Assembly (NCBI RefSeq): GCF_021869535.1
Contig: NW_026262679.1
Span: 74,462,001-74,526,000 of the forward strand
Reading direction: 5' to 3'
Origin: Mytilus californianus
Lineage: Eukaryota
DNA: 64,000 nt
Position 1 is the stretch's first letter. The number at the start of each line of letters is the position of its first letter. Both the position numbers and the translations under genes were made by a program. Positions 18,409 to 61,800 of this stretch are shown one piece after another. The notes under the pieces were generated by a model. The model was not told the DNA's origin and ran no database searches. It saw only the letters and a program-made list of their open reading frames with translations.

Positions 18409-21400
18409 TATGGCAAGCCGTTCTCGACAAAACTAGTATGTTTAAACCATTTTTCGAAAAATTTACACACTGAGAATTAACAAAAAAAAGAAAACAAAAA
18501 AAAACCAAACACTGAGATTAAAAAACCTAAAAACACACACTGAGAATTAAAAATTACACACTGAGATTTCACAAAAACGTACTGAGATTACAAAAAATGA
18601 ACAACATACACTGAGAATTGAAAATTACACAATGAGATTTCAAAAAGACACACTGAGATGATATAAACTGAAAAACACACACTGAGAATTTGAAATTACA
18701 CACTAAGAATTTAAAATTACACATTGAGATTTGTGCGCACTATTTATGCGCACATATCTAATTAGCATACTTAATCTGAATCTATTACAAGCTCAAAACA
18801 ACTAGGACAGAACTCGTTAGTCCTTCAATTTGGCGCTAAATGTTTTATTAAACACATTAAAAATACAACGTATAGAAAAACTACGTTATTACAGACCAAT
18901 AGAACAAGAAATATACCAACTTACTCTCATTATAAAATATAACCAAATGGTGAAAAACTTTATTAAAATTATAAGAAAACATTGGAACAATAAGATAAGA
19001 TAAGAAAACTTTATTTTGATTCGGCATAAGTTAAAAAGACACAACACAAGCTCTAAGGAGCTTTTGACCGAATATAAAAACATATACATAACATATAAAA
19101 ACAGTCTAATTTGACATATAAAACAACCTGTTATACGAAGTTAAATCTCACTTACATAGCATGCAATACAAATTTAGCAACAAATTTAAAATGAAATAAA
19201 ACATGCTAGACCAGAGCAACCAAAAGCAACATAAGTAATAAACATCTCAAGAATTATCTGCAAGCAGAACAGCGACATTCCAAACCGTTCCAGGACTGAA
19301 CAAGACTCAGTTTAAAATGTGAAAAACTATTTTCAGTCCTGAAATGGTTTGGAAGGCTGTTCCATAAAGTAGCGGCAGCAAATTTGAAAGATTTTTTACC
19401 GTAACGGGTTGACTTTACCTGTGGAACATCCAGAATATTTACATACCTGAAAGAATACTTAGATTTTTTGACACTCACCAAATTTTGTAAGCACACAGGA
19501 GCTATATTATTTATAATCTTAAAAGTTTCTAGAGCCATTGTTCTAATCCGTCTAATCTGCAAGGAGGGCACCTTAGCTTTAAGTAAGAGGTCCTCGTAGG
19601 GGCTGGTAAAATCCTCATATACAAAACGGAGTGCTCTTTCCTGCACCTTTTCTAATTTTTTGGAATTTTTCTCAGTGCAAAAAAGCCATGCCAAAGGACA
19701 AAAATTAAAATTACTAAGAATAACGGTATGAAAAATAGTAAGTTTACTAAGTCTATCCAAAACTGAGCCCAAAAGTTTTAAAACATTTAATTGCTGTGAT
19801 GCCCTCCTACAGATTGAGCTGATATGAACATCAAAATTTAACTGATAGTCAATTTCAATGCCTAATAATTTTACTGTTTTTTCACATGTAAGGTTCGAGT
19901 TTTGAATATGTATAGATGGGTTTTGTTCAAAGGTCTTTTTGCCAACAGCCAAAACTTGAAACTTGTCGGGATTTGCTTGCATTTTATTCACCCGGAACCA
20001 CTCAATAAGTATTTTTGACTCAGATTCCAAAGTTGAAATTAATAAATCAAAATCTGGAGTACAGAAAGACAAAGTATTGTCATCTGCATAGTTATATAAA
20101 CTACCATTTTTAACAAAAAGAAAAATATCATTTATAAATATGTTAAACAACAATGGCCCTAGTATAGAACCCTGTGGTACGCCTTTATGGATGTCAGCCC
20201 AACCACTCAGAACATTGTTGACTTTAATTTGTTGTTTACGATTTGATAAATAGGACTTTAAAAGAGCAACTGCATGGGGGGATACACCATATGCTGATAA
20301 TTTATCTAGCAAGATATTGTGAGGCAGGCAGTCAAAAGCCTTAGAAAGATCCATTAATACCGCTGCAATGTACTGGTTTTTATCAAGAGCTTCACGCCAA
20401 TCTTCTAACACTCTGAGAAGTGTGGTCTGACATCCATGTCCACGTCTAAAAGCACACAAAAAAGGATTAAATATTTTATCAAAGTATTCAGTTAGTTGAA
20501 TTTCATATATTTTTTCAAAGATTTTAGAAAATATGGGTAAGACACTAACTGGTCTATAGTTTGTTTTTAATAATGGGTCACTCTTTTTATGAAGGGGGGT
20601 CACTTGGGCTACTTTAAGTTTATCAGGAAACAGTTATTTGCAATTGACAAATTTACAAGAGTTGTCAGCTGTTGTGCAATATAAGATTTACAATTTTTTA
20701 CTATTTTTGCTGGAATACCATCAGCTCCTGTAGCCTTCTTGATGTTTATTTTATTGACATTTTTGTTAGATACTTTCTTGAATTCAAAGTCAGAAATATG
20801 CTTTCTGTTACTCAAAATTTCTTTTATACTTGGGTGATTTGAGGTGTCATATACCACATCTGCTCCAATTTTGTCTGCTACTGTGCAAAAATACAAACAA
20901 TGCAGTGATTTTTTTCCCAAAGTGCCTATTATATAGCATATAAACGTAACAAAAATATAAAAGATTACCTTGCGAAATCAGGGTAACAGTTGAAAGACTT
21001 TTGAAAAGGGACCATGCTTAAACAGTCTTAAGCAAAAAATCCCGATATACTGTTAGTAATAATCTGAATTATAGGCAACAAACTTATGAATATAAGTTAG
21101 CAAAAAAAGTTGTTAAGCCTTGAAATTTATTACGAATGTTGGTTGTAAGAACCGCATTTCATTATAATGACAAGAGTTCGGGAGACCAAGATATTAATCT
21201 GCTGAATTATTCAGCTCATGAATATTCATTAGTAATTTGCATATTAATCTCAACGTGTATTTTTGAAATCTCATTGTGTAATTAACAATTCTCAGTGTGT
21301 TTTTTTTCAATTTATTTCATCTCAGTGTGTCTTTTTAAAATCTCAATGTGCAATTTTAAATTCTCAGTGCGTGTTTTTCATTTTTTTAAATCTCAGATTG

Positions 21401-21564: not shown

Positions 21565-23799
21565 ATAAAATCAGCTACTTTTCCAGACCAACTAAAACAA
21601 GCACAAGTTGTACCATTGCACAAAAAGAACAATGTACTTGACGTAGGCAACAATATATAGATCAGTAAGGATACTTCCTGTTATTTCAATTTTTTTCGAA
21701 CGGGCAATTTACAACCAGCTAGTTGAATACTTCAATGCACACTTTCAACCATACTTATCAACTTTCTACTCAGAATAATTGAGGATTGGAAAATGGCAAT
21801 TGATAAAATAAATTCATTTGCTCAATACTAATGGATCTTTCTAAGGCCTTCGAATATCTTCCTCACGATATTCTGCTGCTTAAGCTTGCAGCGTATGGTC
21901 GGACTTTCAACTTCTTCTCTAGAACTGATGAAAAATTACTTATCTAACAGTGTTCGAGTTGGCTCCAGTGTAAGAAATTGGCAAAATATACACAAAGGAG
22001 TACCATAAGGTTGTATTTTTGGTCCTATACGTTTCAACATTTTCTTAAATGATATCTTTCACGTCACCTCACATAGTTCACTCTACAATTATGCTGACGA
22101 CAATACACTTTCTTTCTCATTCAAATAAGGATATAGACACAGTTATTTCTACACTTGAAAAAGACAGTTTGGCTCAGATAGATTGGTTCTCTTCCAATCA
22201 AATGAAGGCAGACCCTGAAAATTTTCAAGCTTTGGCAATTGGCAAAAAAACAATGGACAAAAACATTACATTTGACATTGCAGGTAACAAAATAAAATGT
22301 GAAAAGAGGTCAAACTATTATGCATCACAATTGAACTTAATTTCAACACACATATATCTAACATTTGCAAAAAAGAATCCAGACAACTTAATGTCTTAAA
22401 AAGACTTGGTATATACTTGAACAAACTGAACAAACTTAACAATATTCACTCTTTCATTATGTCAAACTTTAACTTCTGCTCATTGTCCTGGCATTTCTGC
22501 AGCGAGGCAAACACTACTAAAATTGAAAAGTACAAGAAAGAGCACTCCGCTTTATTTACCAGGATCACAATAGCACATATGATGATTTACTTTTGAAATA
22601 AAAAATGCCATCTCTTAAAGTAAGACGCATAAGAACCATGGCAATAAAGGTATTTAGAACAGTCAACAAAGGAAATACAATATACCTACGTGATCTTATA
22701 AACATGTAAGAAACAAAAGAAACAAAATATTATTTCAGATGTCAAAACTTAGCTGAAATACCTACAGTTAGAACTACAGGGTATGGCTTGAAATCATTCA
22801 GATATTCTGCAGCCAAACTATGAAATGAGTTACCAAACCACTTTAGAACTGAAACATCTTTTACTCAATTCAAGAGTCTAATAAATTCATGGAATGGCAA
22901 CTCATGCCATTGCAATGCATGTGCTTAGTATTTATTTTAAAGTTTTATGTTACAGTTTTGAAACATGATAGTGCGCTGCTTATTATAATTCCACTCTTTT
23001 TGTGTTTTATTTGTTTAGCGTTTTATTTTTTGTGATTGCTGTGCTAAAGTGTTTTATGTTGCTGCTTTAATGCTTCTTTTAGCTTAGTTTTCATGCATGC
23101 ATATAATGTTTAGTATTTAAATTAGTTCAGCCTTGACTAACTGTACATTGAATATATGTTTTATGTCTTCATGCTTTAGTATCAGTATTGTGTATGTTTA
23201 TTGTGTAAATGTATGTATTTGTCGGTTATAAAAGCTCAAAGAGCTTATGTTATTGTTTTGTGACATGCCGACTTTAAATAAAGCTTTTGATTTGATTTGA
23301 TTTGATTTGAGTTACCGAAGGTATCACCAGGTCAGAAATTGTTGTTTCGGTATACTGACTTAATTTTATAGTTTGATTTTTAAGTTAAATTCTCCGATGA
23401 ATCCTTAATGAATTATCATAAACGTACAAAAAATAAAATAACTCCCTCAGGCAAAGTCACATTAGATGGCAGTGGATTGGGTTATCATAGCTGTGCACCT
23501 GTAGTTCTGAATCCTTGCATGGCTTTCATTATTTGAATATGAACGGTATATTCATTATAGTTTTTTATGTGCTTTTAATGTACTCTGTAGAGTTGGGCTT
23601 TTTTTTAATAATTATTGTTTATTTCAATCAGAGACATATAATTTTTTTGTTAATATGCTGAATGAAATAAAGATTTATTTCCTTACTTACTGACCGTTAT
23701 ATTCCGGGGGCTAATATTGTGAGCCATGGGACGAAACAAAATGGTTAAAATCTTGGGGACGAGTCGTCTTCCTAAAACATCAAAGATCATCGGATTCTA

Positions 23800-45900: not shown

Positions 45901-46282
45901 ATTGGTTTCCGTTCTCTAACTTTAGTTTGCCCCAACCAAATGTTATTAAACTTATACACAATGCGTATTACCACCAAACACAGATCAAGTTCGAATTTGG
46001 GTTGCGTCACTTTCACCGTTCTTGAATTTCCTCCTTACTGTATGTTATTGAACAATGAGAGTACTCAAAGCCCCGAGCAATCTCTAATGACAACATACAG
46101 AAACAAATGTCATTAAGTTTCAAAGTTTCAAAGAAAACAAAACGTAGATATGTTTGAATTATTTACAAGTTAGTACATATATATATGTGTCCCATAGACA
46201 CATTCTTCTCTTATTTGAAGATGCAAAATTCACTGTCAAATACTCATGAATTTACTTCGTTATCTCCTTCTTTTTCAGGAAA

Positions 46283-49200
46283 ATGCATATTCAAATAATC
46301 ACACTTTGCGTAGGATATTTTATTACCTATGCATGTGCATCAGTTCCAATGGAAGTATCCAGTACATGGGGAAAGAATGGCAAATTAAAGTCGTCTGCGT
46401 TCTGCACATTTAATGTTACAGAAAAACAAAGAAAGGGTGCATGGAAAATGACAATAAATACCAATATTCCAACAAAATATATCAAGGTATGAATTAATTA
46501 AAGAGAGGCAAAAGATACCAAAAAGTAGTCAAACTCATAATTCGAAAACAAACTGACAATGCAATTGCAGAAAACGAAAAACGACGAAAAGAGAAACAAC
46601 AGAACATAAAGAAAAAACATAGAAAACTAAAGTCTGAACATCACAGACCCAACAAAAAACCCGGGGAATAAGAGGGAAAAGGGGGGGGGTCTCAGCTCTG
46701 GAAGGGTAAGCAGATCCTGCTGTTTATTCAAAAGAGAATGATCAGAAGTATGACAGAAACATAAAGTATGACAGAAACATAAAAAATATACATTAATTCG
46801 GGTAATAAACTCAATTACAGAAAATGAGAGCAAAAAAAACACAAAACAAAAAAAGTGTAAGACCAATAAAAAAAACAAATTGCTGAAGAAATCACAATAC
46901 CATTCTGAAATCTGAAATTTAACAATGCAACATACTAGTAAGTATGTCGATGTAACCCAGAGATATGCTAAAAATCAGTATAAATGCATGTACCAAGTCA
47001 GGAATATGTCAGTTGTTTTTCACTTGTTCCGTTGATTGTTAGCGTTCAATGTTGTAAGTTTTTATGGACTTCCCCTTTTATAATTTGCCTTGGAGTTCGG
47101 TGTTTTTGTTATACTTTTTCACAGTGGTCTTTTACCCTAATCTTGCTTTTTTTGTCATAAAACTTGAAAAACGAATACAGATTTATCACGATTAATCGAA
47201 ACAAACATTCCTAATATCACATTGGTAACAAATTCTGCAAGATGACTTTTTCATTGAGGTGGACAGTTTTGATTCATTTTCTTATACAAAACGAGCAAGT
47301 AAATAAAAGTTCTGTATTGAAGAAGTCTTATTTGTAACAATAAAAAAAACAAAATATTTTTTATAATGACAAAATGTCTTCCAAGAAAGACGTGTACGTC
47401 TGTACGTCCTCTCCAAACATTTATTTATTCCATGTTTTGGAATGGAAACCATAAAAACCACTCATATTAAAGTAAAATTAGCAGGTACACATCGTCATGT
47501 CCTGTAAAAGAACCTGTACAAGTTTGGTGAACGACGCCGACACTAGACGCTATAAGGGGACAAATACACTTATGGTACGGATTTGAGTGCGCCCCTTTGG
47601 AAAATCTTTCATTAGGTTCGCTCGAGATAAAAAAAATAAACAAATTCCTTAAGCTTTTGCGAACACCAACACAAAAATAAGAGCAGTCATAAGTCAACGG
47701 TCGACCTTGTCTTTGTGTGTTAGAAAATTGCAATATTGGATTTGTTTAAACATACTGACTCTGTTTATACTGAAAATTTTAAGTTTAAAAAGTTCATGAA
47801 ATTAAACATACAATGCAGATCAGGCGGTTTTTTTTACCAACGGATGTAACTAAAGATTCCCAAGACAGCCGTACCAACGCAGTGATAGATTTAGTACATG
47901 TAATATAAACGTATTGCTACCGTAACAAAACCTGTTTTTAGAATACCGTATTACACTTATCCAGGAACGCCCGCGACAGAAATAAATGCTATATATTTAT
48001 CTATTTTTTTTTTTACAGTTGTTAAATATTGCAAGATACAAGTTAATTTTTATTATAGGTATGGGTAATGGAAGTCACTGACCGCCTTGATGACGGTAAA
48101 ACATACAAAATGAGAAACAAGTATGAATATGGGCAGAAGACAATTGACGTACATTTTACACTTACATATAAAGAGGCAGACGTTCCAATTTCTGGTTTCT
48201 GTTCAAGCAGTGTCGAGGAAACAGCACCCTTGAAAGATGCCGGAAACATTATCAATGAAAATGACTGGGAGGAGAATGGGATGATGGTCATGCAAGGAAA
48301 ATGTATCCTACCTGTTGAAAAGAAACTTGAAGATTTTTATATATCTGTTACTTTAAACGAGGAAACGTTCAAATTAAAGGTATGACTAGACTTCTTCAAT
48401 TGTTATATAACTCATTATTCAATCAAATTCTCGTGTCTTACAGATGTAAGACGATTTTAAGGTGATGAAATACGTTAAATGTGCTCAAATTTTCTTCTTA
48501 GATACAATGTACTGAATGTTTTAGGTTATTGTAAAACCTGTATAAAATATGGCACGTTTTTTCCCCTTAATTCAGGACTGGAGCACAACCGAGTTTTCAA
48601 GAGACCCAAGTGGTCGTTGGTACACATTAAAGAACAAATGGACAGCGCATCCACCAGAATTTACTTTTATTTTCCACATTTATTACGATGCTGACAAACC
48701 TCCAACCGGAAGTTGTGCTATTTTGACAGGAAGTGAACCAAAACCACCTGTAACACAAGAACCACCTGTGTCACCTACAACAAGACAGACGATACAACCG
48801 ACGACAACGCAGAAACAAGCAACACCAGTAATAACAAAGCAGAGTACACATTTGCCAACAACAGAAACGCACACGACACCAGTAACAACAAAAAGTCAGA
48901 CATCACCGTCAACAACGAAAAGTCAGACATCACCGTCAACAACGAAAAGACAGACATCACCTTCAACAACGAAAAGTCAGACATCACCGTCAACAACGGA
49001 ACGTAAAAAAACGCAACGAACAACCCAGCATCAAACCGTATCACCCACTACATCAAATGTACCAGCACCAACAAATCAACCAGGTAAATTTAACGATAAA
49101 CAAATGACCAAAAGCAAGCGGCTCTTTCCATTTGCACAAATTGGCATTCTATTTGCCAAACAAACCATATTCCATTTGGGCCAAGGCAAAATCTTTCATT

Positions 49201-52200
49201 GAGTCAATGTAATAGAAGAGAAAGGATAAATTAATAAGGAATGACGTAGGTAAATAGCATGAATATTTTGATAATATATGTGTATTATTTAGCGTATATT
49301 ATAATTGGTAATTAGCACTTTCACTCTCCAACATTGCATTTTACCTCTCGTCACCCATATAATATCGAGCAGGATAATTTCCTCAGTAAAGATCAACACG
49401 CAATATCTACAGCTTTGGTTTGTATCATTAAATCACACAAATGTGTGTCCCCATTTTTGTTTTTTCCTAGTCAGATTTTTTGTAAATAACGTTTTTTTCA
49501 TTTTTTTTTCCCCGTGGATTTTTGATACAGGAGCCATAAGTACAGAAAAGGGAAAGTAAACAATAAATTAAGAAAATTAATGAGTAGTTTGACAATGTCA
49601 CACTGAACGGATACCGAATATACTGTACTTATAATATGGGAGTTCATGTCACGGTGGTCAAGATATCCTGTTACCTGTCCTTTCAGATAACGGTATAAAT
49701 TATTTAACATCTACAATTTTTCTTATCTTGTCATCCGTCAGTTAACTATGAGCATCATTATGGATCTAAAGATTATTATATTTATGTATGTAATTTCTCT
49801 AACTTCAGGAGCCACGCACCAGGGAATATTGAACTTGTACCATAACAAATTTAAAGGAGATGTAAGTATTTGAAAGTATTATATTTACTCTTTATCTAAT
49901 GCATATATCCTATTTTATTCATTGTTTCACTCTTTGACATGTATATCTATATACATGTATTAATCCAAAATATGTAATTATTCTAACATACTAGTAGATA
50001 CAAATATGTGCATGTACTTAAATGTAACGATATAATTGTTAAACTTGTCATTTTTATATAATTTATGTATTCAGGTTTTTGACTCACGGATAAAATAAGA
50101 ATATATACTAGTTGAAGAAATGATACACTTATTTAAAGGTTTATCAAAATATAATGTTCTAGAAATGTAGAAACAGCAAAAATGTCTTGATTCAGTATTA
50201 TTTTGCTCTAAAATAAAAACAGAACAGGCCATATGGGGACCTCCTTATTTCAACGTCATTTGGATTTAGGTGGTTTGTTATCTCATTGGCATTCATGATG
50301 ATGGGAGTTTTTAACGACCTTGACTGGCTATACAGCCCTCGCACGGTCGGCTTAGATTGGCATTCATCTACATTGTACTTATTTTTATCCATCTACATTG
50401 TACTTATTTTTATACAACAGCCGTCACTGAAATTTGCAGTTTTCCTTTAAATAGGAGTCGTCAAATGAGAGAGTCGCCAATCTGGCAAAACCTCTTAAAT
50501 TTAGAATTATATGTACAAGAAAACAAGGGGAATGACAAAGATGTTCTACTGTTAAGGTTAAAACCGATAGTTTAAGTCACGTGAAAATCTTCGTGATAAT
50601 TTTGTTTAACCTAAGTCAAGCCGTCGTTTTAAATCACAGATATGAAGTAAGCCATAAAAAACGTCAAAATATTCGACGCCCACGATTTCACTATATCCTT
50701 ATCAGGCTAGGGTTCCAGGATTTTTCAGAAAAGTACTAATAAACATTTTTCTTTCTGGGAAACTGCCAAATAATTGCGACCTTTTGAGTTAGATAGTTTA
50801 TAATACGAGCAAGAGAATCATTCACTTCCATTGAATTCCTTTGAATATTTCTTTTAGCACACGGTTTTCCGATTCGATATTTTTGTTTTGATGTCACAAC
50901 TAAAAGCCATGAAATGGTCCTTTTTACCTTTAAAGCGATAAAGATCCATCTGTCAATATGTCACATTTATCATCGATTCATTTTACATTCAAATAATTTT
51001 CCATTTTTATTTAAAAAACAAAGCAGTTTTTCGTGGAATTTTTTTTTGTAGACGATACTGCAATTTTCTCTAAACAAACACTGATCACATGAAACTTTAT
51101 AGATTATTCTTAATGGCATAAAATTGGTCAATTATGTATCAGAGAAATCGGTAAAATAAATTTATGAACTAGCTGTCAGTAACTGCAAGTACTCTCAGAT
51201 CTGTACTTGGTGTCTTTTTGTTGTGGGGATGTATAAGTACAATGTACCCATCCACGTCCATTCTGTGTTTTTGTTAGATGTAGTTCTATTTGTATCCATC
51301 TGATGAGTTAAGCCTTTTTCAACTGATTTTTATAGTTTGTTCTTATGTTGTACTGTTACACCACTGTCCAAGGTTAGGGGAAAGTTGGCGCCTTCAAACT
51401 CGTTTAACCCCGCCACATTCTGTATGTGCCTGTCCCAAGTCAGGAGCCTGTATTTCAGTGGTTGTCGTTTGTTGCTGTGTAACATATCTGTTTTTCGTTC
51501 ATTACTTTGTACATAAATTAGGCCGTTAGTTTCTAGTTTGAATTGTATTACATTTGTCATTTCGGGGCCTTTTATAGCTGACTATATTGTATGAGCTTTG
51601 CTGATTGTTGAAGGCCATACGGTGACCTATAGTTGCTAATTTCTGTGTCATTTGGTCTCTTGTGGAGAGTTTGTCTCATTGGCAATCATTCCGCATCTTC
51701 TTTTTATATTTATGGTACCAGTTTCAGAGAGCACGTGACAATGAAATAATCCGTTATCAGGTACGCTCGAGATAAAAGTTCAGTAGGTCAAGGAAATACA
51801 TAAAATGTCTGAAAGCTACAACATTAAATATAGCAAATCAAACCAGCCAAAATTGTATACGGCGGTGAACCGAATTTGCTCGAAGAAGTTACAACCTTAA
51901 GCTTTACCTTATGCAACACATTTAATTTGTAACTATGAACGGAATATTATCAATCAAGATATCAAGTTTAAATCATATCAGTAACCATATGCATAAACAA
52001 TTAAACTTCTCAAATATCCCTTGATAAAAATGTCGATTTCAAATTAAAATAATTGGAAATTTAAATAATAAATGAATATGTTCTACTTTCAATCCTCTAA
52101 GAATCATGAATTATTACTTTTTTTTTATTGAAGTTTGAATAATTGATAACGGTTATGCAATAGTATTAATTAGTTCTTCCTAACATCAATGAAAGTAAGA

Positions 52201-55200
52201 GATAAAACAAACAAGAATAAACTATTACAATTAAATTGAAACGGTCTAAATATTGATTAATTTGCCACAGTCGCTTACACATTGCATTTAAAATACATAT
52301 ACATTTGAAATCTTACTATTTGAATAAGCTCTTGGTCGCTCCTTTTCTATATTGGTCTCCTAATTTTTGGTACGAAAAATCTAGTACGCAGTTGCAGAGC
52401 ATTGACAACAGAAAATTCCAAAAAGTTTAAAAACATTAAATTTACAAAAAATTACTATAGCAATGACATTTCATGTCAACAAACAACTGCTGGCTACTGG
52501 GCTGGTGATACAATTGGAGAAGAAACGTCCATCAGCACAAGCATCGAGTCATGATAGATTGTAGGCGTATTATTTGGTATGCCAGACACGCTTTTCGCCT
52601 TCATAATTCTCATCAGTCGCGCTCGAATCAAAATGGTTTGAGGGTCAAATCAAGTTGGAAGCTGAAAAGCATTGACAATCAAATATTCCCAAAAGTAGTG
52701 CCAAATATGGCCTATGTCATATATAACGCAGATAAAAATCCACAGGGGTTCGAATATTCAACATTTAAAAAAAAATAGTAAATTTACAAACAAAAAATTC
52801 GCCACTCAATTTTTATTTCACAAACCAAGTGAAATTAAATGAAGAAATTGCACGAAGTAAAAATGGAATGAGAACGGGTGCGTCTACAGTAAGCGTTTAT
52901 GTCAGTCGTTTCTACAACCGTCTTAGAATACTGACACCGGAAATATTATTAGTTACATAGTGTGCTAGTGACCTAATACGATATATATATAGGGTCAGTA
53001 AATTCCATATGGGGTGAGAGCGAATACGATATATATGGGGTCAGTAAATTCCATATGGGGTGAGAGCGAATACGATATATATGGGGTCAGTAAATTCCAT
53101 ATGGGGTGAGAGCGAAGCTCGAATCCCCATATGGAATTTACTGACTCCATTTATATCGTATTAGGTCACTAGCACACTATGTAACGAATTTATCTTAACG
53201 ACTATCTTAACATGTGGTATTTAGACTAGTGGCCTATCAAAGTGATCAAGTCTTCAATAGCGTTAGTATTAAGAACCTACTTCCATTGGTCTATACAAAA
53301 ACAAATGCCAACAATAACAACTTGTTAACTTTAAATGTGCTTTATGAATTTATTTCAATCATTCATCATATTCAATTTCTTCGTCTGTTAAAAACCTTTA
53401 AGATTTTTCCTCAACACCGTGTTGTTTTTATAAAGGGACGTAACACCACTACTAACCGTGTATTTAAATAAGCCCCGCCTACTAACCCAATATGGAACCC
53501 TACTAACCCAATATGGAACCCTACTAACCCAATATGGAATATACACGGTCTCCACGCGGTTGCTTTCAACCAATCATACTCCTAGAAATGTATAGGAGGT
53601 AAGATAAACAGATTTATTTCTCATGTAAATGTTTTTTAACTCTTTCAGGGCACTTATTATGGCGCTGGAGAACAAGGAACATGTAGTTACTCACCTCCAA
53701 GCCTGCCTCCAACAGTTGCAGCAGGAAACATAAGACGTTATATTGCATTGAATAGACCACAGTTTTTCAACTCATTGTCTTGTGGAATGTGCTTTAAGGT
53801 GATTCAAGTTACTTGTATAAAACCAGTTAAAAGAATTAAGTTAGTTTCATCCACTGTTCTAACACAAAGAAACCAGAGAATCGACTGTTGTGAGGAGGGT
53901 AGGGGTGTTCTTGTCAATATCAAAGTGGGGAGAGAACCATTTACCCAGCGTGTAGACCTTCTTATTGCTGTATTTCATGTTGATATTGTACATGATATAC
54001 GCTCAGATCAAAAAGTTGTACCAAAAATGTATAAAAACAGATAAAAAAGTACTCTGCTGGTTTTATTTCATCACCTCACTACACATCGTTATATTATATT
54101 TAGCTTAACATGTCAAACGTTTTTCAAAACTCTTAACTTCTTAAGTAGCAAAATTGATAGCAAAAATCATAACAGATACAAATTTCATTGCATGTAAGTG
54201 AAATATTTTTACATTTGTATTTATGTAATGAAATACCAGTAAATCATTACGAATATACTTTTTCTAAGCAGCGTGATTATAGAGATATTACAATCATTTG
54301 TAGGTACACGGAAGTGGTAAAGGTTTAGGAAGTGACCCAATAATAGGAGATTCTATCGTGTTTGTGAAAGATTTATGCCCAGAATGTCTTGCTGGTAAGT
54401 ACCTTGTACACAAAAATTGATTATTCACTTGTGGAGAAGGATCTGCTTACCCTTCTGAAGCACATGAGATCATCCCCGGAATTTGATGGGTTCGTGTTGC
54501 TCAATCTTAAGTTGTCTATGTTGTGTTTTGTGTACTGTTGTTCATCTTTACTTCGTTTTTCGTTTTTATTTGCCATGGCATTTCCAGTATGTTTTTGACT
54601 TATGAGTTTGAATTTCCCTTTGGTATCTTTCGCCTCTCTTTCTGAATAAGGCAAACAAAACTTATCTATATTTGTTTCCTGCCTCCCGGCTAGATATTTT
54701 GGAGAATTGTTCTGGATTTTAAAGATGACTAAACCAAAATGTCTAAACTATGACTGTGCATTACCAAAAATGTCAATAAAAAGTGTTAGGGGAGGCGTAT
54801 AAATTGAGAGTAGGTTAGTGTAGCCAAGAAACAGAACTATATCTTATTTAGCTTAAGGAAAGTTAGTACAAAACCCCAACAATACTGTACGTCTCTATCA
54901 ATTACAGATAATTATGAATTATCTCAAAAATGCTAAAAGTATATTTAGAGAGAAATTCCTTATTATATAAACCATTTTGCATGGATTTGTATGAGTGTTG
55001 TTAGTTAATATCTTACGATATAATACAACGGTCTAGTGCGAGTTATTGATGTTCATCGTTTTCTCTCGTTCACTTTAGAAATACTCTCCGATGTAAATAC
55101 TCAATCAATTATAAATAAACTTGGGCCCAAAAATCCCTTACACATTCTGCTGTGCATTGGAATCCGATTACCCTTTGTTTCACGCATGTAATGACTCAGT

Positions 55201-58200
55201 TTAATCTCATGTTTTCTTAATTTTATTGATTTTAAAACTAAGTTATTGTACCAAATGAGAATGCCTTAATTTTGCACATAATTGTGAAATTTGAAAATAA
55301 AAGACTATTCACCAGTGTTGCCTCCCATCTCACGTTTATATGGTTTAATGCAGGTTTTCTATCTTATTATTTATCAAGGATCTGTAGATCTAGCAGAAAA
55401 CGGAGATGGCAGGTGGGAAGTAGAAATACAAGCAGTTCAGTGTCCAGTAGGCAACACAAAATTGGAATACAAATTTCAGGGAAGTAATCCATGGTACCTA
55501 AAACTTCAAGTTAGGAATGCAAGGTAAGTATATCTTATCGTTAATTTCAAATGAACAGTTGGTAACACAAAACTGGAGAACAATTTCCAGGGTCACAATG
55601 GCGCTATGAATTGTAACTTTCCATTTCCATTTAGCAACATTCCATCGACGCCTGTTTATTGAGTGTATATTTCCCAGTTGATACGATATTTCAGGGCTAG
55701 AATTGTTTATCATGATGTCCAATGATGTTCAAAGGGTTGCTGTTTACGGGAAGGGGATATAATCGCTTTATCTTAAATCGCGAAATCAGCAAAAAATTAA
55801 AAAAAATTGTATGGCATATTTTGTCATCAACTAGTTATAAAAAGAAATGAAAGAGAAAAAAGAGGAAACAAACATATATGTACTGTTTGTATTGTACCGT
55901 CATATATTTGTGTTTGCTGGTTTATAAATAAATGGCTGAAGAAATAGCCAATAAGCTAATCTATGAATAGATCAGTTAAACATGTGATAATAGAAAAGGC
56001 GGCTTATGACGAATTATTTCTTGATTCATCAAAATCTCTTTACGCACTAGACAAAACCTCTATTCAACCATAAGTCTCAGTGAGGCGTACAACAAAAAGC
56101 AAAAGCTCACGTATCAATGCAAAAGTAAGACAGTTGCTAACACCGTTTTTTTTTAAATCTCATATTTTTCTCACAGAATTCCAGTCACTGGACTGTCACT
56201 ATGGCAACCGAAAAGTCAAAGATGGGCTGCTATGCAGCACAGCTCAGACGGATTTTGGTTAATGGGTCCAGGTCATTTCGAGAAACCAGTCCATCCATCT
56301 GCTCAGGCTCCACTTAAAATGAAATTAACAGCTGCAAATGGCGTTGTAATAGAGGATCAAATTACTAAAATGCGTAAGTTGAAAAAAAAAGAACAAAAAC
56401 AGAGTTCGTTTAATTTAATCCTGGTATCTATGATGAGTCTATTTAAAATTCATATCTAAAGTCTTACGCTATCATATCGAAGTGTTTGCGAAACAACTGT
56501 TAACGTAATGTTCATTTCTTAGAGATTTTTTTGTAAAAAAAAAAAAAGATAGATCACAAAAATTGTACAACGATTTCTTCTGAAGTATGTACAAGTCCAT
56601 TCATTTACAAATAGCTAAAGAAACATGTATTTTTTATGCTTAAAGGACGTTCTTTACCAATAGACCTGCACAGGTTGTGATACAAATATATATGTACATT
56701 TGAGTATTTTGGGTTACTTTAACACGTGTTATCTGCAATACCTTTATTTTTACCTCAACGTAGGCAGTGGTGAAAAATATTATTGAACTGACATAAAGTA
56801 TTGAAAACAGTTATTTTTCAAATATTAAACATATTTTGATTAAAAATAAATATAGAGCAATTTACTTACATAAAATAAAGCGGAATTTGAAAATATTAAA
56901 TTAATTTGATGCACCAAATGCACTTTTCAAAAATGAATCAAATATTAAAATTCGAACGTACTTTACATTACAGTAAACTCGAAATAACACAAAAAGGCAA
57001 AGGAAAATCTGTGGAAAATTATTTATCTTAATCTAACGAAAACATCTTATTCTCCCCAAAATTTCACGGAAATCTGTAAATATTAATGCGAGTAGAACAG
57101 TTATTGTACTCGAGGGCTAGTGCAATATAATATTCTACTCGGGACAATATCAGTAATATTGGTGCAATAACCGCATGAATTTTCTGATATCAAATCGACA
57201 CGCATCAAAATGGTGCTTAAAGGTATTCTTATTGACAGGTTTTTAAAGCTAGTGGATATTTTCAATTAAAAGCCGTCGAACATAGTACTTTAATATGGAT
57301 ATGCATAAGGCGAAGGAACCTATAAACATAAATCATGAAACATATAATTTGGATCGAAAATCAAATTATCACCACTTTTAATTATTCTAAAATTGGAATG
57401 ATTGTAAAAACTTTTGAGTTTGACATTTGATGAATAGCTTAATTGCATGAAATCATAAACAATAATAATCTGTGTAAGTGATATGCTTTTTTTCTACGTC
57501 TTATCGTTTATAGCAATTAAGTTGCAAAAATAATAATCAAAAACTTCCCTTTTTAGTGAACGGGAAAAGTAATTGATTTTTAAGTACATTAATGCTGCTT
57601 TAAAAGCAAAACACAAAGTAATGTGCTGAAAAAAAATATGCACTAGGAAAACTGATATTCGAGAAAATAATCTCAAAATGATCAATGTTAGTGGAAAATA
57701 GTTAACATAAACAAAACCATTGTTTGTCATTTAATGTTATATATGCACACTTAATGTAATAAATGTAATTAAAGAGTATGAGAAAGTTATACTCATTTTT
57801 ATATAATTGTATATCATATCCAACTATAGCAGTCATCACGTGACTTTGGTGACGTCACACATCACCCGTATAATGCCCCAGTAAAATATATAGAAATGCA
57901 CAGGGGCTTTCAGGAATCGATAAAATAAATTACTTTAAGTTCATGATACAAAAAGTGTGGAAATATATATTAATTCTTCATATATGATTAATGATTAACG
58001 TTTAATTACAGAAACTGATAAATTAATAAAATTTCACATTTAAAATATAATTGTTTTTCGAAAGTTATTTGTTTGCAAAAGTATGAACATGTTAAAGTAT
58101 TAGATATTAACTACTAACATTTTCATACGTGATTTGAAACAATAAGTAAAATTAAAACTGGATGTATTTTAAAAAGCAGAACTAACGAAATGTATGTTCT

Positions 58201-58864
58201 TTTCCAAACATCCAAGTAAGCGGAAAGACACTGTATATACCACAGTAATCTCTTGTGGGGATGTACTTACGATGTACTTGGACATTCAAAACTGGTTTAA
58301 CCGCACCACATTTTGTTTTTGTACCAAGTCTGGTATTTTGTTTATATTTCGTTAGTTCTGCTTTTTAAAATACATCCAGTTTTAATTTTAAACTGTTTTG
58401 AACTGATAAATTAATAAAATTTCACATTTAAAATATAATTGTTTTTCGAAAGTTATTTGTTTGCAAAAGTATGAACATGTTAAAGTATTAAACATAATTC
58501 ATTAAAACACATACCTAAAACTCTGGCTTAGTCTTTTATTTTCTTCTTGGAAGATTTGGGGGCAGGAAGGTTCATAGAAGTTCGTAGAATACCAACAAAT
58601 TCTGGCTTAGTCTTTTATTTTCTTCTTGGAAGATTTGGGGCAGGAAGGTTCATAGAAGTTCGTAGAATACCAACAAATTTGGTTTGTCTATATTAACTAT
58701 TTTCCACAAACATTTGTTTGTTTCAATGATAATGATTATATGAAATGTTATAACATTGATCCACAGATTGATTATATTTCTATTTTTTTCTTACAGCTAA
58801 TGAAGTTGTTATTCATGGTACTGGTAAACAATTTCCACGGGACCCGTCTTTACCACAGGCTTAA
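46283..58864 (+). CDS. Secreted expansin-like protein (signal peptide - CBM2-like x2 - Thr/Ser linker - DPBB domain - CBM63-like domain), 578 aa; coding exons 46283-46486, 48059-48379, 48576-49083, 49809-49861, 53649-53798, 54304-54394, 55379-55523, 56177-56373, 58797-58864
   Basis: Nine exons with GT-AG ends and compatible phases sum to 1737 nt (578 aa plus stop). The C-terminal half (KFKGDGTYYGAGEQGTCSY...IALNRPQFFNSLSCGMCFKV...VFVKDLCPECLAGSVDL...WEVEIQAVQCP...YKFQGSNPWYLKLQVRNARIPV...LKMKLTAANGVVIEDQITKMP...GTGKQFP) matches the EXLX1/YoaJ pattern along its length. AATAAA at 58898-58903. Confidence 0.9.
48885..48992 (+). repeat. Coding 27-bp tandem repeat x4 (TTK[S/R]QTSPS) in the expansin-like linker
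   Basis: acaac[a/g]aaaag[t/a]cagacatcacc[g/t]tca occurs four times in frame. Confidence 0.95.
51165..51710. repeat. Family A interspersed repeat copy in expansin-like intron 4
   Basis: Colinear with 38945-39530. Confidence 0.8.
52952..53185. repeat. Fold-back element with internal 46-bp unit x3
   Basis: gttacatagtgtgctagtgacctaatacgatata is inverted at both ends. The unit tacgatatatatggggtcagtaaattccatatggggtgagagcgaa starts at 52977, 53025 and 53071. Confidence 0.9.
53487..53540. repeat. 21-bp minisatellite, about 3 copies (cctactaacccaatatggaac)
   Basis: Direct reading of the sequence. Confidence 0.85.
58523..58679. repeat. About 78-bp tandem duplication in expansin-like intron 8
   Basis: ctggcttagtcttttattttcttcttggaagatttgggg...gaataccaacaaatt occurs twice. 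Confidence 0.9.
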
Positions 58865-61800
58865 ACGGTTTATAATAATATGTAGAAATTGAATATAAAT
58901 AAAGGTTCTCTGGTATACGATTTTTGTTTATGTTCAGATTTGTATTTCAAGTATTCGCTTTATAACCAATTATACATAAAAAGGATAACATGATATCCGA
59001 AGAAAATTTGACAGCAGGTCTCACTAAGTACCAACATCCTACTCCTAAAAATAAAAGTACAAACACCGAAAAACAACAACGAACAAGACATGGCCCAGAA
59101 CCTGACTTGGTACAGAAACAAAATGTGGTGCGGTTAAACCAGTTTTGAATGTCCATTGCCTATTTACTGGTACACTTGTATATGTATTGAAAATTTTAAG
59201 CATATTTTATAGATAAATAAAATTGAGAATGGAAATGGGGAATGTGTCAAAGAGACAACAACCCGACCATAGAGCAGACAACAGCCGAAGGCCACCAATG
59301 GGTCTTCAATACAGCGAGAAACTCCCGCTGTTACATAAACCCAAAGTCATACAATCACTAAGATCTGTTTTCAGAACTATGATAGAATTGAATAAAACTA
59401 GGTGAAATGGCTTCAATTTGTAAATTGTTCATTCAAGTCTTCATGTTCTTATGCACTATCATATGTGCTGTTGAATTCAGAAACATGATGACTCACGTAA
59501 GAAAATATGTATGGCAAAGTTCAGGTACAAAGTTGTTTTTGCTGTGCATAAATATAAACTATGTAGATTACATCGGAGTGCACGTTTCAAATGTGGCCTA
59601 CATTTCCTACTTGAATGACAAACAAGTCCTAAATATGTTCAAGTTTGTTTGTGACATCAGTTACTGTCTGGTGAATTTTTATTGTACATATTTGAATAAA
59701 ACTGTATCAAAAATAAAATAAAAAGAAAAGTAGTTATCTAATTATAGCTAGCCTGTCAACACTGGGGTTATGAGTTCGAGCCCCGCACATGACAGGTGCG
59801 TTCGATTCCAATCTTTATCAACTAGGATTCTAGTTTTCCTATTGAAGGTCGGTGGTTGTCTCCGGACACTCAGCTTCATCCAACAATAAAAACTGGCCGC
59901 AACGATATAGCCAATAGTGCAGAAAATTGCGTTAAGCACCAACATTTGATCAATCAATCAGGCAATCAATCACGAACCAACCCAGGGCAGTAGTACAACA
60001 ACATAACTCTACACAAATAGAAAATAATTGAAAAGGGACCATTAGATCGGTACTAAAAACAAAAACAACTGAAACAATGACTAAGATTTTAAATGTTCCA
60101 ATCTAGGAGTAGTCGCAATAATTGAAAGATAATTCGAAGTTCAATTAAAAAAAAAGGTGATAAATAGACCTTTTTTTCCCAGACAGATATATCAATATTC
60201 ATATTATTCCTTATTTATCGTCATTTGAACGTTAAACCCATTATTAACAGTTTTTCTATTTTCATATAAAAGCACTATTGTACTCACTCGTAAGTAAATA
60301 TTGTTCCATTTACTTTTGTGTTAAAGCAATTAAAATTCGTAACTGTTGAGTAAAACAAAAGTTAATAGATACCTAATGATGCAACAATGGCTTATCCTTA
60401 CAAACCATTAATCAAATATCAATTTGATATTTGGAGATGAATAAAATTGCTAAATGGCCATTAACAAAACAACTAGACGGTTTACATAATCATCACATGA
60501 TGGATGAATAATGCAATCCGGTACTAATGTCACGAAGTAGGACGAATTAGTTTACATAATTCTTTAAAATTCATTCACAACATGTCTGAACCGAACTTTG
60601 ATTTTGTTTTGACTTGGTTTTGGTGCTAGCTCGACATTGATGACCGTTTGGTGACATATTTATTTCTGTATTTGTTTGTTTTTCATGTTGACATACAGCC
60701 ATGTATTCTTTGATTATTTTTTTCGTAATTAGTTTTCCGATCTGTTGTTATAGTGTACCGCTAAATTTAAGTTGTCTACCTAGGAACAATCATTTGAGTT
60801 CCCTTGACATTCGGAACGACTCCGAATGTTCTTTAAAATGGCCTTCATGTAGGACTCAGAACAAGTTCGGGCAGTTATACCTAAGAACATATGGACATTT
60901 CTAAGGTAGAACTGTTATATAATAGAATTGTTCTTATACAGATAAGAATAGTTCTATGACAGATTACAGTTCTGAAGATGGGTTATAACTGACCCAAATG
61001 TATTTGTACACTCATATCTGCTTATTCATAATTATTAACTATAGGACAATTCTGATGCTTCCGAAGTTTCATGAGATCATGCCAATAACAATTTATTTGT
61101 GTGACACTTTCGCAGAGTAAACAATATCATATACCTTTTTTTACGATTACATATACCTATCTACATCCTCCTCCTAAATAAACAAAACCGTAAACAAACA
61201 AACAACAAGCAAACAAACACAGTATCAAACAAAATTAAACATTCATAACTAGAACAATAAGGTAATAGTGTCAAAACTTCTATGGATATTGCACATCATG
61301 TTTTTTTCTGCACTGTTCTATCGCTGCTTATATAACATTAAGAAGATACGGTATGATTGCCAACGAGACAACTATCCTCCGAAGACCAAAAGAAAAGGGT
61401 GTAAACAACTATATATCATGGTAAGACATTCAACAATTATCAAAACCAATAACGTATAGTAAGCTTCAAATTGAGAAAACTTAGTCCTTTGCAAAAAGCA
61501 ACCAATGCCAACCACTTGACTACTGTTTCCTAGGACAGGCGCATAAAATATAAGCTTGCTTTTAGCTCTTCATGACCATCTTAATACTGGGGTTGGACCG
61601 AAGATTAATTCGTATTAGTTCATAAATTTTCATCAGTTTTATTTTTGTCCCACCTCAAAATCATTACGTTTTCCTTAGGACTAAAAGAAACAATTTAAAA
61701 AAAGCATTTTTTATTCTTTTTGTTATGATTTTTTTTTGGATTCTGTTGTTTTTACAAGCATTGCAGGTATAACTTAAGACAAACACTTCCTTGGTTCCTA

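Follow-up and report, generated by a model that had tools for sequence, protein, structure and literature searches.

Two coding units follow one another on the forward strand of the Mytilus californianus window (the whole stretch of DNA analysed, 64 kb in length): an upstream unit (46283-49083) specifying two CBM2-like modules and, 545 bp downstream of it on the same strand, an expansin unit. The region 49748-58864 is, in our assessment, probably a genuine M. californianus gene of six coding exons, encoding a secreted ~254-aa expansin of the EXLX1/YoaJ kind, with the CBM2-like unit most likely a separate gene. The surrounding 64 kb consists of AT-rich animal DNA and contains a non-LTR retrotransposon. 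Features of the locus are:

46283..46486, + strand: exon 1 of the upstream unit; start codon and hydrophobic signal peptide, then the first half of CBM2-like module A
48059..48379, + strand: exon 2 of the upstream unit; second half of module A and first half of module B
48576..49083, + strand: exon 3 of the upstream unit; second half of module B and Thr/Ser/Pro-rich mucin-like linker
49084..49202, + strand: read-through tail if the exon 3 donor is unused; 39 further codons and TGA at 49200-49202
49203..49747, + strand: spacer between the coding units; ATTAAA at 49427 and AATAAA at 49562
49748..49861, + strand: expansin exon 1 (coding part); start codon at 49748 (or 49760), signal peptide and start of the mature protein
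53649..53798, + strand: expansin exon 2; N-terminal D1 (double-psi beta-barrel) with GTYYG and CGMCFK motifs
54304..54394, + strand: expansin exon 3; mid D1 as far as CPECLA(G)
55379..55523, + strand: expansin exon 4; end of D1 with the D82-equivalent Asp (D446), and start of D2 with the W-Y pair
56177..56373, + strand: expansin exon 5; D2 core (CBM63 / Expansin_C-like beta-sandwich)
58797..58864, + strand: expansin exon 6; final D2 strand and TAA stop

A sequence-only reading of this DNA had joined nine GT-AG exons into one uninterrupted protein, and this ORF was exactly reproduced from the window (1737 nt joined, 578 aa plus stop), with every quoted motif present, AG/GT borders and pyrimidine tracts at all nine exons, and 100% identity of residues 56-578 to the M. 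californianus RefSeq protein XP_052101135.1. The fourth exon of that model (49809-49861) forms the 3' end of a longer exon, the first of the expansin, with its own ATG and signal peptide; the alternative acceptor chosen both there and by RefSeq (AG at 49807-49808, exon start 49809) lies within the signal-peptide coding sequence, and the exon start coincides with the predicted signal-peptide cleavage site of the expansin. Comparison with RNA upheld the model in part: the junction 49861/53649 is present in one spliced RNA contig, whereas the acceptor at 49809 is read through unspliced. Collinear proteins from M. coruscus, M. trossulus and M. edulis agree with the other expansin junctions.

Exons 1 and 2 of the upstream unit both end in phase 0 at the identical alignment column, after an invariant Lys in exon 1, and exon 3, whose linker-coding part includes 27-nt tandem repeats at 48856-49024, ends in phase 1 at a conserved CCAG/GTAAAT donor. 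The orthologues P0059, P0060 and P0044 begin in the same manner as exon 1, and homologues of the complete unit (signal peptide, two CBM2-like modules and mucin-like linker) were found in Mytilus only. The internal repeat of module A and module B is significant (local score z = 8.2), and an AF2 model of medium confidence (pLDDT 69.6) has eight strands, in keeping with the earlier description of N-terminal beta-sandwich repeats. Their closest resemblance is to CBM2 and to the CBM modules found in endoglucanases of animals: language-model neighbours fall in CBM_2/CBM49/CBM_3 clusters; the top AFDB matches are modules from proteins that carry the name ‘Endoglucanase’ (E 5.9e-6, TM 0.74, 24% identity); CBM2 domains occupy ranks 1-2 of a wide VIA-align search, at a Z of 6.8 that is below 8 and not decisive; and Foldseek superposes CBM2 at a TM of about 0.5. 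Pfam CBM_2 returned no match at E up to 1 for P0043, P0044, P0059 and P0060, nor for single exons. The likeness to CBM2 (Cellulomonas fimi Cex 1EXG, XynD 2XBD, ScLPMO10C 6F7E) is that of a ~100-aa beta-sandwich, although the cysteine pair of classical CBM2a is placed otherwise. CBM2 modules bind cellulose through a planar face made of three exposed aromatics; Trp18, Trp57 and Tyr71, candidates for such a trio, do not vary in either module of any species, and their spacing is reminiscent of W17/W54/W72 of C. fimi Cex.

Whether these modules belong to the same protein as the expansin, as had been proposed, is where gene predictions and transcripts part. A fused protein with the same junction has been predicted for three Mytilus species by RefSeq and submitter models (XP_052101135.1; M. 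galloprovincialis XP_076103678/9 and submitter VDH99837; M. edulis submitter CAG2240088), its frame is uninterrupted across a consensus donor and acceptor, and donor, acceptor and phase compatibility are also conserved in M. trossulus. The read-through tail beyond the exon 3 donor is not conserved, a stop following after just 5 codons in M. trossulus and M. galloprovincialis, which is compatible with an intron as much as with a free C-terminus. With its acceptor at the cleavage site, splicing would join the upstream unit to the mature N-terminus of the expansin, and since the modules are cellulose-binding-like such a fusion would be functionally sensible. Even so, the 578-aa fusion as main product, in which the CBM2-like modules would anchor the expansin on crystalline cellulose, much as happens in bacterial proteins that join CBM2 to an expansin, is considered unlikely. 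RNA contigs (X2 record 1, X7 record 8) are unspliced across 49808/49809 and continuous over 49677-49861, so the 3' part of the spacer is 5'UTR of an expansin transcript that starts at or before 49677 and has a stop in frame at position 49688. Another run (Logan SRR30826389, for which no species is recorded) yields an intronless mRNA contig of 1128 nt whose protein is 79% identical to that of the window; here, too, a stop lies in frame 5' of the ATG. The upstream exons have zero depth in all of four RNA runs, among them runs in which the expansin exons are covered, a junction 49083/49809 being testable only where the upstream exons are expressed. Expansin orthologues of chitons, gastropods, other bivalves and a brachiopod, that is, all those outside Mytilus, are stand-alone proteins of ~245 aa with their own signal peptide; the locus is split in two by the annotations of M. 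trossulus (322 aa and 250 aa), M. coruscus and RefSeq M. edulis; the spacer contains polyA signals; and the fused RefSeq model XP_052101135.1 begins at the internal Met56, lacking a signal peptide. The single-protein claim is a matter of gene prediction only, set against RNA contigs, orthologues and three Mytilus annotations that favour a stand-alone expansin of ~250 aa. The upstream three exons most likely form a separate gene, and a conjoined isoform spliced through the acceptor at the cleavage site may exist in addition; the conflict between fused and split annotations among five Mytilus genomes is in need of resolution.

The C-terminal 234 aa constitute a true two-domain (D1+D2) expansin of EXLX1/YoaJ type. 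A family profile built from 28 members and searched against PDB sequences matched both domains of 9ms5 (6.7e-21), EXLX1 2bh0/3d30 (2.4e-19) and 4jcw (1.9e-14), as well as maize EXPB1 (2.8e-8) and the D2-only Phl p 2 (0.005), with profile positions 31-226 covered by the expansins matched at 6.7e-21 to 8e-13. The NCBIfam model expansin_EXLX1 (NF041144) aligns over profile positions 1-191 of 194 at E 1.1e-19, scoring 70.4 bits against a cut-off of 100. A Pfam check proposed earlier gave a divided answer, in that homology over both domains was established by the family profile while the window protein stays under the gathering threshold for EXPB1_D1 (14.5 bits versus 27) and has no match to Expansin_C, as with CBM_2 for the upstream modules; at E < 0.01, EXPB1_D1 is matched by 9 of the 28 family members and Expansin_C by 7. 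The Pfam and NCBIfam expansin thresholds derive from plant and bacterial sequences.

Structural modelling points the same way (AF2 pLDDT 91.5, pTM 0.87). Domain 1 is a six-stranded double-psi beta-barrel and domain 2 a CBM63-like beta-sandwich of the Phl p 2 kind; the 12 best Foldseek matches in the PDB are exclusively two-domain expansins, and both domains superpose on EXLX1 as anticipated (3d30, E 1.8e-15, TM 0.71/0.80, 236 columns). In EXLX1, the conserved D1 residue D82 is required for wall loosening. HMM alignment places it opposite a family-invariant Asp (model residue D446, motif GSVDL), and W125/W126 opposite a W-Y pair in which the Trp is kept in most members and the Tyr position is variable, whereas Y157 corresponds to an invariant Asp, with the aromatics F and W 2-3 residues further along the same strand in the alignment. 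Six cysteines are invariant in the family.

Profile, NCBIfam and Foldseek results agree with the claim of a complete D1+D2 expansin, encoded by an intron-rich animal gene, over a GH45 enzyme. That the locus encodes a GH45-like hydrolytic endoglucanase, or represents gut-content contamination, is extremely improbable. The DPBB fold of D1 is common to GH45, accounting for weak Foldseek matches, but GH45 chains cover D1 alone (TMq about 0.3, E about 1e-2) where expansins cover both domains at 1e-15, and the family profile matched no GH45 in the PDB sequence search. The likeness of GTYYG to the expansin TxYG motif suggests that the second catalytic Asp of GH45 (the base) is absent, and hence that hydrolysis would not occur; going by published GH45/expansin alignments, the base presumably has no counterpart in this motif. 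Contamination had been left open for bivalve expansins, which were listed by Chase et al. (bioRxiv 10.1101/637728) without a decision between cellular genes and contaminants; for this locus it is effectively refuted by the AT-rich, retrotransposon-bearing animal DNA around the gene, by spliceosomal introns that are conserved and by a syntenic arrangement in M. trossulus.

Homologous expansins are present in Lingula, a chiton and numerous gastropods and bivalves; in Lingula the neighbouring genes are GST and CYBA. Mytilus, Haliotis, Liolophura and Lingula agree in alignment column and phase for all five introns; three of the five are also common in column and phase to the green alga Elliptochloris, one of these recurring in Apatococcus, and two are common to molluscs and the sea anemone Actinostola. 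Chance alone would predict some 0.04 coincidences (5 x 5 intron pairs, roughly 690 possible sites). Phylogenetic analysis recovers monophyletic molluscs (SH-aLRT 95) with Lingula as sister (86), and separates eukaryotic from bacterial expansins (SH-aLRT 96); the branching order of alga, amoeba, cnidarian and lophotrochozoans is not resolved by the tree. Outside the animals, the closest relatives come from eukaryotic microbes (38-46% identity), with bacteria reaching 27-31%. The family already existed, with the same five introns, before molluscs and brachiopods diverged, and groups with eukaryotic-microbe and green-algal expansins and not with those of bacteria. Intron conservation across molluscs and Lingula, together with sharing with alga and anemone, indicates a gene that is old, is not contamination and is unlikely to be a bacterial gene with later introns.

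An old horizontal transfer followed by intron gain, as suggested by the sequence-only reading, is weakened accordingly. Direct passage from a bacterium to an animal ancestor with all introns acquired afterwards would fit the patchy metazoan distribution, the bacterial origin of the best solved-structure matches and annotation names citing YoaJ; it is nevertheless rated very unlikely, given the introns common to Elliptochloris, Apatococcus and Actinostola, the higher identity to eukaryotic sequences and the supported eukaryotic/bacterial split. A fuller scenario is less likely than not: metazoan expansins would stem from an intron-bearing eukaryotic gene, either passed from a green-alga-like donor to an early animal lineage as genomic DNA complete with its introns, or ancient in eukaryotes and since lost by most animals, and Mytilus would have started to assemble a new multidomain protein by conjoining its lineage-specific gene for two CBM2 modules and mucin to the expansin, via the acceptor at the signal-peptide cleavage site. 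The shared introns move the question of origin from transfer between bacterium and animal to eukaryote-to-eukaryote transfer or an old eukaryotic gene. The question posed by Chase et al. is settled by an expansin lying in animal DNA, syntenic between Mytilus species, with five introns conserved from chiton to brachiopod. Reads for ‘Expansin-YoaJ’ called bacterial in a study of Kellet's whelk (PMC10913743) may be the animal's own. Public annotation already carries the names ‘exlX’ and ‘expansin-YoaJ-like’, and a literature search found no functional study, both as the earlier reading had supposed.

Molluscs have GH9 and GH45 cellulases of their own. In the mechanism proposed here, the mussel expansin would be secreted via its signal peptide, and D2 would dock through a flat aromatic surface on cellulose or another beta-glycan related to it. 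The D1 groove, in which an Asp and a Thr are conserved, may then loosen the polymer network without hydrolysis, opening the substrate to the GH9/GH45 enzymes of the mussel. Were this predicted activity, as a non-lytic cellulose-loosening partner of molluscan cellulases, to hold, it would bear on carbon turnover in the sea and on biomass processing. A role in algal digestion alone is called into question by the carnivorous whelks Nucella and Babylonia, which have three expansin paralogues each, a poor fit with a purely algal-cellulose function. The target could instead be chitin or another structural beta-glycan of the animal or its prey (shell/periostracum, byssus, radula, egg capsule, adhesion), a reading considered improbable for the mussel protein: the retained W-Y pair and D82 equivalent, CBM2-like modules in the adjoining unit that resemble those of animal cellulases, and the mollusc's own cellulases, with M. 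edulis Cel45A 1wc2 among the Foldseek matches, all speak against it. On the side of such a non-dietary substrate stand the paralogues kept by these predatory or scavenging whelks, the lack of conservation by alignment of the third aromatic in the EXLX1 cellulose-binding strip, the ‘peptidoglycan-binding’ label given to some related expansins (JGI) and, by depositors, to two PDB expansin chains, and a sea-anemone ‘Expansin-YoaJ’ with a chitin-binding domain that is up-regulated in the adhesive pedal disc (PMC6626399).

Bacterial expansins (EXLX1/YoaJ 2BH0, 3D30, 4FER; Clavibacter 4JCW/4JS7; Streptomyces 9MS5; Xanthomonas 9MS4) have equal domain order and size, and of the Bacillus subtilis EXLX1 residues noted above, D82, W125 and W126 have conserved equivalents by alignment, while Y157 aligns with Asp; identity is about 22%, the mussel gene is eukaryotic with five old introns and six invariant cysteines in its product, and its host is an animal without a wall-colonising lifestyle. 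The D1+D2 fold is also common to plant beta-expansins and group-1 pollen allergens (maize EXPB1 2HCZ and Phl p 1 1N10, Foldseek E 3e-12 and 1e-11, respectively), and D2-only Phl p 2 superposes on mussel D2 (TMt 0.75-0.76), yet plant proteins are more distant than bacterial or eukaryotic-microbe expansins, and their plant-specific insertions are missing in the mussel. Expansin-like proteins of plant-parasitic nematodes are injected into plants, have no D2 and show another domain order. As a secreted animal protein combining a CBM2-type module with D1, Globodera Gr-EXPB1 (CBM2 + DPBB) would parallel the predicted Mytilus fusion (10.1101/637728 and established background), although D1+D2 is complete in the mussel, whose CBM2-like modules probably come from a gene of their own. 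The GH45 enzyme Cel45A of Mytilus edulis (1WC2), from the same animal lineage, has the DPBB of D1 in common and gives a D1-only match (TMq 0.32, E 7.5e-3), GH45 being without D2. Expansins of Vannella robusta (UniRef entry P0098), Elliptochloris bilobata (P0112) and Apatococcus (P0151) fall in the same clade as that of the mussel, against bacteria; the Vannella protein differs from it by a Ser/Pro-rich tail and anchor, and two algal introns are without mussel counterpart.

Reading through the + strand at 46200–58950 and joining candidate exons reproduced exactly the nine-exon, 578-aa model proposed in the sequence-only reading (1737 nt, i.e. 578 codons plus TAA), with every motif quoted there present; exon borders are AG and GT(A/G), with acceptors rich in pyrimidine. 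The model joins, across 49083/49809, an upstream unit with a signal peptide, two putative CBM2-like modules (A and B) and a mucin-like linker to an expansin unit with a double-psi beta-barrel domain (D1) and a CBM63-like domain (D2).

Exons of the joined model and retrotransposon features in the window
46283-46486, + strand: exon 1, AG/GT-type splice borders in the joined ORF
48059-48379, + strand: exon 2, AG/GT-type splice borders in the joined ORF
48576-49083, + strand: exon 3, AG/GT-type splice borders in the joined ORF
49809-49861, + strand: exon 4, AG/GT-type splice borders in the joined ORF
53649-53798, + strand: exon 5, AG/GT-type splice borders in the joined ORF
54304-54394, + strand: exon 6, AG/GT-type splice borders in the joined ORF
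55379-55523, + strand: exon 7, AG/GT-type splice borders in the joined ORF
56177-56373, + strand: exon 8, AG/GT-type splice borders in the joined ORF
58797-58864, + strand: exon 9, ends in the TAA stop
19254-20603, - strand: reverse-transcriptase ORF (449 aa, RT motifs) of a non-LTR (LINE-like) retrotransposon
22049-22399, + strand: second fragment related to that retrotransposon ORF, near the first

Residues 56–578 of the model are identical (100%; cluster look-up and BLASTP) to RefSeq XP_052101135.1 (P0043, 523 aa), which has the same nine-exon chain but starts at an internal Met, without a signal peptide; P0043 and its sub-ranges served as queries in place of the spliced 578-aa sequence. 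Fused models are also annotated in M. galloprovincialis (556 aa; VDH99837, XP_076103678/9; a single gene in both assemblies) and M. edulis (CAG2240088, 606 aa), and stand-alone expansin models in M. coruscus (254 aa), M. trossulus (250 aa) and RefSeq M. edulis (254 aa), with a separate upstream protein in M. coruscus (327 aa) and M. trossulus (322 aa), the latter called separately at a locus (L001) syntenic with the window. Molluscan matches from phmmer and a follow-up search carry the names ‘expansin-YoaJ-like’ or ‘exlX’, as had been anticipated of automated annotation.

Identification of the C-terminal part as a complete D1+D2 expansin is borne out by profile and structural comparison across both domains. 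The HMMER comparison that had been suggested was divided in outcome: Pfam returned nothing above threshold for single exons or full proteins (EXPB1_D1 14.5 bits vs a cut-off of 27; Expansin_C no match), while NCBIfam expansin_EXLX1 matched the window's protein end to end (E 1.1e-19, 70 bits, below its cut-off of 100). Within the family, EXPB1_D1 matches 9 of 28 members and Expansin_C 7 of 28 at E < 0.01. A profile of these 28 members (alignment A1) retrieved nine distinct PDB chains, each either an expansin or an expansin-related pollen allergen, among them Streptomyces 9ms5 (6.7e-21, both domains), Bacillus subtilis EXLX1/YoaJ (2.4e-19), Clavibacter 4jcw (1.9e-14), maize EXPB1 (2.8e-8), fungal 7wvr, Phl p 1 and Phl p 2. 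The AlphaFold model of the mature expansin part (P0043:290-523; pLDDT 91.5, pTM 0.87) has two-domain expansins as its best 12 Foldseek matches in the PDB, and agrees with the proposed likeness to EXLX1 (3d30: E 1.8e-15, TM 0.71/0.80, 236 columns); D2 taken by itself resembles Phl p 2 (TMt 0.76). A hydrolytic GH45 reading was rejected, GH45 enzymes, including Mytilus edulis Cel45A, reaching no better than E ~1e-2 and TMq ~0.3 in Foldseek against expansin matches down to 1.8e-15. In the HMM alignment, EXLX1 D82 aligns with a family-invariant Asp (model D446), W125/W126 with a W-Y pair, and Y157 with an invariant Asp; an F and a W follow two to three residues later in the same strand. Six cysteines are invariant in the family.

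The fusion of this expansin to the upstream modules as a single gene is not upheld by the transcripts seen, which are stand-alone. Stand-alone proteins start with Met and a hydrophobic signal peptide, the counterpart of which in the window is an ORF from 49748 (second ATG 49760) continuing straight into the proposed exon 4; the proposed acceptor (AG 49807-49808) therefore falls inside the region coding for the signal peptide, precisely where cleavage is predicted. Transcript evidence was drawn from four RNA runs (three contig runs and raw RNA run X16) placed on window positions 48000–53900. A 507-nt contig of run X2 aligns at 49677–49861 and then 53649–53800, and is spliced and therefore RNA; it confirms junction 49861/53649 of the proposed chain and runs unbroken through the proposed acceptor (49808/49809) into the 5'UTR, as does a 152-nt contig of run X7 covering 49745–49861 without mismatches. 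Upstream of the expansin ATG the frame is stopped by a TAA at 49688, and polyA signals lie between the units at 49427 and 49562. In an intronless 1128-nt mRNA contig (Logan SRR30826389), a stand-alone orthologue of 246 aa (79% identity to the window's protein) is preceded by an in-frame stop in the 5'UTR, and orthologues outside Mytilus are all ~245 aa, each with its own signal peptide. Because contigs cross the acceptor unspliced, the frame is closed upstream and orthologues are of this length, a stand-alone expansin transcript is shown and the fusion is not.

Exons 48059–49083 drew no coverage in any of the four runs; the three contig runs cover expansin exons only, and X16, empty over the exons of both units, is uninformative either way. 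The fusion is a prediction without support from the transcripts at hand, all from samples without upstream-unit coverage, and could still exist as an alternative isoform. Run X14, with 93% of exon-2 words present and a contig volume typical of RNA, seems to be a sample expressing the upstream unit. In M. trossulus the upstream gene meets a stop five codons past the conserved CCAG|GTAAAT site, as do M. galloprovincialis genomic ORFs, vs a frame open for 39 more codons in M. californianus, to 49202; the read-through tail is therefore unconstrained, fitting an intron or a free C-terminus equally. Each of the four RNA runs gave very high contig and read depth at 51150–51750 and 52925–53700, in the long intron 49862–53648, together with numerous variants and loose ends; these stretches are dispersed repeats that are transcribed or plentiful at other genomic sites, and do not belong to the gene.

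Modules A (~ residues 20–117) and B (~125–223) of the upstream unit are homologous to one another, judged by a local score of 79.5 vs 29 +/- 6 for shuffles, and a phase-0 intron splits each after the same invariant Lys. Their proposed cellulose-binding character finds backing in structural matches to CBM2 and none in Pfam: the unit has no match in Pfam, NCBIfam or PDB sequences, nor has the module profile in PDB sequences, and a homologue search with the modules found only two proteins, both from Mytilus, and no wider family. Language-model neighbours, a lead only, are CBM_2/CBM49/CBM_3 clusters (score 0.82). For the medium-quality AF2 model of module B (pLDDT 69.6, pTM 0.62, eight strands), the compact matches that Foldseek ranks best in the PDB are the CBM2 domains 2rtt and 6qfs (TM ~0.5); a wide search independent of Foldseek also places CBM2 domains on top, at middling Z values (6f7e and 2xbd 6.8; 1exg 5.9), and the four best AFDB-cluster matches are modules within ‘Endoglucanase’-named proteins (best E 5.9e-6, TM 0.74, 24% identity). 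The modules are thus predicted, with moderate confidence, to be divergent, animal-type CBM2-like cellulose-binding modules. The linker (exon 3) contains, at 48856–49024, 27-nt (also 54-nt) tandem repeats encoding a Thr/Ser-rich 9-aa unit, is Thr/Ser/Pro-rich and mucin-like overall, and varies in length among Mytilus species; the C-terminus of M. coruscus P0059 reads the repeat in another frame, which may come from a frameshift or from faulty assembly. Ahead of the ATG at 46283 lie a pyrimidine tract and an AG (46268–46282, ttctttttcag|gaaaATG), so the unit may have a further non-coding 5' exon.

Expansins have been annotated in several marine bivalves, with cellular gene vs contamination unconfirmed (Chase et al., bioRxiv 10.1101/637728), and ‘Expansin-YoaJ’ transcripts in a whelk study were binned as bacterial (PMC10913743). 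The retrotransposon ORF and fragment in the window are typical animal repeat content; with AT-richness (GC 0.29–0.35) and many tandem repeats, that ORF marks the DNA as animal-type. Contamination is rejected on this ground, together with the syntenic M. trossulus locus and introns conserved from molluscs to the brachiopod Lingula: the gene is a real, ancient animal expansin. Searched by phmmer against 1.84 billion representatives, the 65-aa D2 exon returned mostly exon-sized fragments, the first full-length relatives being P0011 and P0016; profile searching extended the family to Polyplacophora and numerous Gastropoda and Bivalvia, frequently as two or three paralogues (carnivorous Nucella and Babylonia among the gastropods), Lingula (42% identity; its gene lies between GST and cytochrome b558 genes), a sea anemone (where the gene model is chimeric), amoebozoan Vannella (46%), the trebouxiophyte algae Elliptochloris (38%) and Apatococcus, and many environmental sequences, with bacterial expansins at 27–31% identity only.

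The suggested phylogeny, run as a quick maximum-likelihood tree of 91 rows, places the animal homologues in a eukaryote-type group apart from bacterial rows (SH-aLRT 96), with molluscs monophyletic (95) and Lingula as their sister (86); alga/amoeba/cnidarian/lophotrochozoan branching is without resolution, long branches being involved. The most informative new result comes from the introns, mapped onto one alignment from exact exon chains rebuilt from genomic loci. M. californianus, M. trossulus, Haliotis, Liolophura and Lingula have five (phases 0, 0, 1, 2, 1) at identical columns, and Elliptochloris has three of the five: one ahead of GTYYG (phase 0; also in Apatococcus), one within the Gly preceding S/A-x-D (phase 1) and one within the Arg/Lys preceding (I/V)P (phase 2). 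The latter two, the only positions assessable there, also occur in the anemone Actinostola. Chance would give ~0.04 coincidences (5 x 5 intron pairs, ~690 site-phase possibilities), and the introns are therefore older than the animal gene lineage. This argues against a bacterial origin with later intron gain, and favours either eukaryote-to-eukaryote transfer in which the introns were kept or an ancient eukaryotic gene that was lost many times.

Several relatives showed local peculiarities. The annotated Actinostola sp. protein P0118 (347 aa; GCA_033675265.1, locus L006, 8001–29622) is a chimera of a partial, internally duplicated expansin D2 region and a 7TM receptor segment, and the gene needs re-annotation. 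An intronless homologue, P0104 (41% identity; Logan ERR7850081 contig, GC 0.23), lies beside a PP2C gene on a gene-dense, very AT-rich contig, probably from an AT-rich microbial eukaryote. In M. trossulus, the final 20 codons of expansin exon 2 recur as two short extra copies (L001, 13258–13317 and 13343–13402; 85–90% protein identity) just 3' of the real exon, in the following intron, a small local duplication not present in the window.

The M. californianus expansin is thus already annotated, yet uncharacterised; as the sequence-only reading had supposed, a literature search found no functional work on any molluscan expansin. The protein would be secreted from the cell, with D2 binding a polysaccharide surface and the D1 groove, with its conserved Asp, loosening the polysaccharide without hydrolysis, an action that could assist the mussel's endogenous cellulases. 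A live rival is that the substrate is not dietary but chitin or matrix of the animal itself, in keeping with the retention of expansin paralogues in predatory whelks and with the up-regulation, in the pedal disc of an anemone, of an ‘Expansin-YoaJ’ carrying a chitin-binding domain (PMC6626399).
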